Shown here: positions 31,900 through 31,985 of the stretch, one piece after another
How the letters are laid out: each line of letters starts with the position of its first letter
Numbering within the stretch: position 1 is the stretch's first letter
Assembly: GCA_965644295.1 (NCBI GenBank)
Contig: CBFFRP010000367.1
Location: 31,367 to 95,366, forward strand
Origin: Paraphysomonas bandaiensis
Lineage: Eukaryota > Protista > Chrysophyceae
Direction: 5' to 3'
DNA length: 64,000 nt
Translations under genes and position numbers: made by a program
The notes under the pieces: generated by a model
Told to the model about the DNA's origin: nothing
Databases searched by the model: none
What the model saw: only the letters and a program-made list of their open reading frames with translations

Positions 31900-31985
31900 C
31901 CCTCAACAAAGTCGGACTCGCACCTTTTCGTGGTGTTCTGGGGGATAAGTACCGGAGATATTTCTCCGGGAGCCTAACGTGAGTC
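31900..31985 (+). ncRNA. Candidate HDV-like self-cleaving ribozyme at the retroposon 5' end
   Basis: P2 GACTCGC/GTGAGTC; P3 ACC/GGT; L3 TTTTCGT; P1' GTTCTGG followed by GG; P4 CCGGAGA/TCTCCGG; J4/2 CTAAC. P1 pairing is imperfect. Confidence 0.6.

Follow-up and report, generated by a model that had tools for sequence, protein, structure and literature searches.

The first 87 nt of a short, high-copy retroposon family, of which five copies lie in the 64-kb window (the whole stretch of DNA analysed here), probably constitute an HDV-like ribozyme module of the L1Tc/Pr77 type, and self-cleavage by this module would set the element's 5′ end. We put the probability of this reading at roughly 0.55. 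Very probably the head either is an HDV-like ribozyme of the L1Tc type or derives from one, and its fit to the HDV-like fold is far beyond background. Three observed features speak against the ribozyme reading: a tandem mismatch in P1, a P1.1 made only of wobble pairs, and a competing helical register that is more stable than P1.

Ends, copy number and insertion signature of the retroposon family

The earlier note described five copies with a common start, at 23701, 31900, 33806, about 40003 on the minus strand and 55620, and all five were confirmed by a repeat finder and by alignment (Table 1). The octamer CCCTCAAC is exact in two of them (31900 and 55620); three more matches to it in the window (10687, 29594 and 62016) lie outside all family copies found. 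Copy C was considered as a second family with the same head and rejected, the recurrence elsewhere being limited to nt 1–50.

Table 1. Copies of the retroposon in the 64-kb window and features of copy B
Feature	Position	Strand	Remarks
Copy A	23701–24103	+	Older subfamily; start reads CCCTCAAA
Copy B	31900–32414	+	Full length, 515 bp; 96% identity to the 29-copy consensus, positions 1–510
Copy C	33806–33855	+	Head nt 1–50 only, then unique DNA; start reads CCCTTAAC
Copy D	39688–40003	−	Old, decayed 5′ end; 46-nt foreign insert in the P4 slot
Copy E	55620–55900	+	Older subfamily, 3′-truncated
5′ target-site duplication of copy B, AAGGTCTTATCT	31888–31899		Recurs at 32415–32426 with one mismatch
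3′ target-site duplication of copy B, AAGGTCTTCTCT	32415–32426		
HDV-like/Pr77-like head, element nt 1–87	31900–31986	+	Candidate module, from descriptor scores and Pr77 alignment
P1 5′ strand CCCUCAAC	31900–31907	+	Pairs with 31935–31942; proposed cleavage 5′ of C31900
P2 5′ strand CGG(A)CUCGC	31913–31921	+	Pairs with 31979–31986
P3 ACC/GGU closing L3 UUUUCGU	31922–31934	+	Invariant in all subfamilies
P1 3′ strand GUUCUGGG, then GG	31935–31944	+	GG forms P1.1 with U31926/U31927, G·U only
P4 hairpin CCGGAGA-UAUU-UCUCCGG	31952–31969	+	Hairpin kept in three subfamily versions
J4/2, consensus GAAACUAAC	31970–31978	+	Candidate catalytic C31974, then UAA
P2 3′ strand, consensus GUGAGCCG	31979–31986	+	T31984 private to copy B
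LINE-type 3′ domain: stem-loop motif and terminal TAATAATAAGACTTTCAATAT	32218–32414	+	Aligns with the LINE 3′ UTR in L043

Genome-wide, the sample comprised 29 full copies from the similarity search and 40 heads collected by following the order of the contigs. Alignment of the 29 copies with 1.5 kb of flanking DNA defined a block of 510–518 bp that runs from CCCTCAACAAAGTCGG to AATAAGACTTTCAATAT, both flanks being at background conservation. The family start is exactly CCCTCAAC, with the same first base in 29/29 young copies. When copy B was used as a query against its own genome (62.5 Mb), near full-length matches of 94–96% identity were obtained in all 40 candidates scored of 3,259 first-look candidates. 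Exact matches to a 20-base head core number 507 in the genome, against none for its reversed control. For annotation of this genome, the outcome is a repeat family with known limits, of which there are 507 heads or more. Parts of the family are also present in related species (organisms B and C).

Direct target-site duplications of variable length (~8–16 bp) border C1 in most of the 29 young copies. Four of the 29 have 1–2 extra bases between the duplication and C1, with no consistent G. No poly(A) was found at the 3′ end of the 29 aligned young copies, and the last 14 bases of the retroposon are sometimes duplicated. The fixed start combined with variable duplications is characteristic of target-primed reverse transcription from an RNA whose 5′ end is constant. 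By inspection of the 510-nt consensus the retroposon is non-coding, and the family is a LINE-dependent non-autonomous retroposon, a SINE in the broad sense. Two DNA contigs of run X16, from the same organism, show the site of copy B unoccupied (joint 31887 to 32415), indicating that this copy is polymorphic or heterozygous, and hence recently inserted. In the same run, 165 DNA contigs break at 31899/31900. A tail-to-head joint (32410 to 31900) was also seen in DNA contigs and reflects tandem dimers of the element elsewhere.

Five of the 40 heads (L063, L064, L065, L083 and L090) start with TCCTCAAC rather than CCCTCAAC, a proportion above the usual per-site change; this start could define a subfamily or reflect a 5′ end that differed by one base when the copy inserted. 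At L060/L061, where the head is followed by other DNA, only a local duplication was found. The other L3 variants are scattered point mutants and form no second family. A canonical CC-type core had 5 matches elsewhere in the genome, fewer than the control, and a metagenome scan with a 19-nt core returned two matches, both judged to be due to chance.

Predicted fold of the head and its fit against background

All the sequence elements that the earlier note had read in 31900–31985 were found where it had placed them. In consensus numbering, C1 corresponds to 31900 and C75 to C31974. The HDV strand order P1-P2-P3-L3-P3′-P1′-P1.1-P4-J4/2-P2′ is present as a nested double pseudoknot anchored at nt 1. 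P1 pairs nt 1–8 with 36–43 (C-G, C-G, C-G, U·U, C·C, A-U, A-U, C-G), and P2 pairs nt 14–22 with 80–87 in 8 bp, with A17 bulged. P3 has 3 bp (nt 23–25 with 33–35, ACC/GGU) and closes L3 (nt 26–32, UUUUCGU), which carries the signature U in first and G in sixth position, as in HDV-like ribozymes. P1.1 consists of two wobble pairs, U27·G45 and U28·G44. The P4 hairpin pairs nt 53–58 with 65–70 and is followed by J4/2 (nt 71–79), in which C75-U-A-A-C precedes P2′ and provides the C-N-A-A signature. These results support the HDV-like helix order, the P3/L3 and J4/2 assignments and C31974 as the candidate catalytic C, all of which had been proposed from copy B.

Two caveats raised at the same time, the mismatched P1 and the UU in L3, are true of the whole family. 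P1′ follows P3′ directly, and in every copy the P1 helix is composed of 3 bp, a tandem U·U/C·C mismatch (U4·U40/C5·C39) and another 3 bp, with an energy of −8.5 kcal/mol. A competing contiguous helix, C1-A6/U40-G45, is more stable than the P1 register (−12.3 kcal/mol) and is the one predicted by nested folding; its formation removes P1.1.

Other parts of the earlier description were not borne out. DNA contigs indicated that G31972, C31973 and T31984 are private to copy B. The perfect P2 of this copy is therefore not a family feature; the family P2 is CGG(A)CUCGC/GUGAGCCG, 8 bp with a bulged A, which is still a good helix. The hairpin in the P4 slot of copy D does exist, but it is a 46-nt insert of another repeat and does not amount to P4 covariation. 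This insert (39903–39950, minus strand) has 96% identity to its source repeat, which occurs as pairs ~6.7 kb apart on several contigs, perhaps as the ends of a long element.

Across subfamilies, nt 1–52 and 71–88 are unchanged. P4 exists in three subfamily versions, all of them hairpins, one with a G-C to G·U change and one with an added G-C pair. When ten old copies were compared with the young consensus, the core (nt 1–52 and 71–88) had 10.2% substitutions and the body 14.5% (p = 0.008); P4 had 19.4%, with the hairpin kept. Because dead copies decay evenly, the difference between core and body indicates that the core changed more slowly in the master lineage. Pair counting within the family gave no pairs changed on both sides. 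Since the core is invariant, the covariation test was uninformative rather than failed.

To compare the head with background, we scored by energy all helix combinations in HDV strand order anchored at nt 1, in a flexible mode and in a canonical mode, in which P1′ had to follow P3′ directly and P1.1 was required. The head scored −29.7 kcal/mol in the flexible and −25.3 kcal/mol in the canonical mode, and the numbers of dinucleotide shuffles that equalled it were 1/2000 and 0/2000, respectively. Among natural start positions in the window, 49/127,800 equalled the score of the head. A signature descriptor, which added bases known from published ribozymes, was much more discriminating; it specified a 3-bp P3, U1 and G6 in L3, P1.1 on L3 nt 2–3, and C-N-A-A before P2′. 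The head scored −24.3 with this descriptor, and the value was reached solely inside the head region of the repeat among 491,504 positions (127,780 in the window and 363,724 in fetched loci). We then widened the descriptor so that the proven L1Tc ribozyme passes, with one P1.1 pair being enough and the C allowed up to 6 nt before P2′. Scores were −35.3 for Pr77, −24.3 for the head and −22.2 for the best other site among 460,140 positions. The descriptors were written with the candidate already seen, and the anchor base was fixed independently by the target-site duplications.

The best descriptor site outside the head region (−20.9 to −22.2 kcal/mol) lies on the plus strand at window positions 46733–46736; it does not coincide with the terminus of a repeat and was taken as chance. 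The nested minimum free energy of the head was unremarkable relative to shuffles (z = −0.70). At gathering thresholds, Rfam reported no ribozyme or small-RNA family in the whole window, and at E ≤ 10 it gave no ribozyme, tRNA, 5S, 7SL or snRNA match in 31700–32400.

The partner LINE and comparison with known elements

A reverse-transcriptase scan, together with the sequence of locus L043, yielded a frame of 1,669 aa that encodes Exo_endo_phos and RVT_1 domains, at positions 1423–6432 of this locus (minus strand). The 3′ UTR of this LINE and the last ~190 nt of the retroposon have in common a stem-loop motif and the terminal TAATAAT-AGACTTTCA-TAT. The stem-loop, GGT-GCACC...GGTGC...GCACAAGCAG, occupies 32224–32276 in the window and L043:1360–1410 (minus strand), and is probably the recognition element of the reverse transcriptase. 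Isolated copies of the stem-loop are found at window positions 56922–56957. The LINE clade with the common tail has giant frames (L043 on the minus strand, L044, L046, L047 and L048). Database relatives of the LINE protein are 2,500–2,800 aa long and have, besides the endonuclease and reverse transcriptase, a SET domain (PF00856); no trypanosomatid entries were among the matches.

Full-length LINE copies reach >4 kb further upstream and begin with ~162-bp tandem monomers, 2.5 in one copy and ~5.5 in another. LINE-A was ruled out as a carrier of the head, its 5′ end, defined from two copies, consisting of tandem monomers. In LINE-B, another family of this clade whose 5′ region was located approximately, neither head similarity nor a strong descriptor match was found. 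Since the LINE families examined are without the head, the element is a SINE-like chimera rather than a LINE with an internal deletion. The earlier label of a SIDE/SINE-like family therefore holds as far as it denotes a non-coding LINE-dependent retroposon with a fixed 5′ end; the SIDE part of it does not, the 5′ end of the partner LINE being without the head.

For comparison with L1Tc we used the 77-nt Pr77 sequence printed in PMC1874656, where Pr77 is described as a promoter starting at +1. In vitro cleavage by the corresponding ribozyme, L1TcRz, falls 5′ of C+1, and its P1.1 has a single pair in the active form (PMC3185411). Global alignment of the head with Pr77 gave 52 identical positions and a score of 45, against 21.8 ± 6.6 for shuffles (p ~0.001). 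Both modules occupy the first ~80 nt of a retroposon; the cleavage site lies 5′ of C+1 in L1TcRz and is proposed to lie at the same point here. Both start with CCCU, and in both the base of P1 consists of three C-G pairs. They share P3 ACC/GGU with a G after it, GGG closing P1′ and CUAA in J4/2, and both combine an L3 of the form U...CGU (equal at U1, C5, G6 and U7) with a weak P1.1. The upper part of P1 is G-C in Pr77 and A-U here, with both strands changed, and P2 and P4 differ in sequence yet pair in both, the comparison being one of two sequences. P1 here has 8 positions with the tandem mismatch rather than 7 (−8.5 versus −17.5 kcal/mol), and L3 has UUU where L1Tc has CAA. The present element further differs from L1Tc in its stramenopile host, in that the LINE sharing its tail is without the head, and in that its self-cleavage is only predicted. 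Like NARTc, the non-autonomous partner of L1Tc with the 77–79 bp ingi/RIME/SIDER signature, the retroposon carries the module at the head of a short non-coding element mobilised in trans. In contrast to the ingi/L1Tc clade, the head is not at the 5′ end of the tail-sharing LINE.

The likeness extends to antigenomic HDV and to the ribozymes of R2 and RTE elements (for the features of R2 HDV-like ribozymes, see PMC3774820): a nested double pseudoknot, a 3-bp P3 joined directly to P1′, the U and G of L3, a C in the catalytic position followed by N-A-A, and a similar size (87 nt here). The head differs from these ribozymes in its mismatched P1, and it has no match to their Rfam models. Relative to HDV, P1.1 is built on UU instead of CC, and the +1 base is C instead of G. 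SIDEs of the R2 or RTE type are likewise short non-autonomous elements whose 5′ end is ribozyme-like, but a SIDE retains both ends of its parent LINE, whereas here the 3′ end alone is common to the LINEs examined. Most LINE-tailed SINEs have polymerase III heads. Our retroposon resembles these classical elements in being short, non-coding and high in copy number, and in having a LINE-homologous 3′ domain and variable target-site duplications; it differs in that no tRNA, 5S or 7SL head was found and the head is ribozyme-like.

Explanations of the head and their consequences

If the head is a self-cleaving ribozyme, its transcription may come from neighbouring genes by read-through or start at a promoter inside the head, and the nascent RNA would fold P1, P2, P3, P1.1 and P4. 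C75 (C31974) in J4/2 would then serve as the catalytic base, and the RNA would be cut immediately 5′ of C1. Such cleavage would give every RNA the same 5′ end and keep the ribozyme on the RNA that is copied. The LINE reverse transcriptase would recognise the LINE-type 3′ domain and insert the copy by target-primed reverse transcription; we infer LINE-driven insertion from the homology of the tails together with the insertion signature.

The main competitor, which we regard as distinctly less probable than cleavage but as deserving serious weight, is that the head, although structured and conserved as a 5′ module, has no self-cleaving activity. It could be an internal polymerase II promoter, like Pr77 in trypanosomes, or a pseudoknot that the LINE protein binds or that RNA stability depends on. 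Such a module may descend from an HDV-like ribozyme that has lost its activity, with the 5′ end arising from initiation at C1. The mismatched P1, the wobble-only P1.1 and the stabler competing register would all make for poor catalysis, and in published examples of such defects cleavage is weak or lost: P1 mismatches are uncommon and tied to lost or weak cleavage (PMC3774820), and a SIDER consensus that lacks P1.1 and has two mispairs in P1 was rated deficient (PMC3383444). Pr77 itself has been documented as a promoter with its start at +1 (PMC1874656), and a conserved core suits any 5′ function. However, U at L3-1, G at L3-6, C75, A77 and A78, as well as the 3-bp P3 joined to P1′, are unchanged in all subfamilies, and it is not obvious why a promoter or protein site should require the full set of signature bases. 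In addition, the family has been active recently and is polymorphic with the exact head.

The two remaining explanations are both very improbable. A head that stems from a small RNA and acts as a polymerase III promoter in unrecognised form, with an incidental HDV-like fit, would agree with what is usual in LINE-tailed SINEs and with the short, non-coding nature of the element. ARAGORN, however, detected no tRNA, Rfam gave no tRNA, 5S, 7SL or snRNA at E ≤ 10, and both TTTT at nt 26–29 and TTTTT near nt 471 would act as terminators in many eukaryotes; the descriptor and Pr77 similarity statistics also count against an incidental fit. As for a pure chance likeness, with a head that has no structure-dependent role, it is compatible with the minimum-free-energy z-score of only −0.70, with the lack of covariation and with descriptors made after the fact. 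Yet only 0–1 of 2000 shuffles equalled the score, no site outside the head region among ~460,000 positions attained it, and the anchor of the fold coincides exactly with the element terminus, which was defined independently. The similarity to Pr77 (p ~0.001) and the better conservation of the core than of the body argue in the same direction.

Returning to the ribozyme reading, cleavage by the head would extend ribozyme-terminated retroposons to stramenopiles; in the top-ranked results of a literature search, 'HDV-like' was not paired with a stramenopile term. It would also mean that a SINE can do without a polymerase III promoter, its head being a ribozyme and its tail that of a LINE, and would offer a natural test of how much imperfection in P1 and P1.1 is tolerated in a family that is still moving. 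A stronger version, which we hold to be rather unlikely, is that a Pr77-type module exists beyond kinetoplastids and was captured as the head of a chimeric SINE with the tail of a SET-domain LINE that does not itself carry it. If true, it would imply great antiquity, horizontal spread or striking convergence of the module, and a class of SINEs whose 5′ end comes from RNA self-cleavage, not from a polymerase III promoter.

Elsewhere in the window, a long tandem array with an 8-bp period was found at 20991–21383, and a tandem duplication with a unit of ~3.2 kb, parts of which are 88–99% identical, at 47672–54358. The minus strand at 41451–43217 encodes a 588-aa protein kinase of the TTK/MPS1 type, the closest named proteins being from ochrophytes, brown algae, diatoms and oomycetes.
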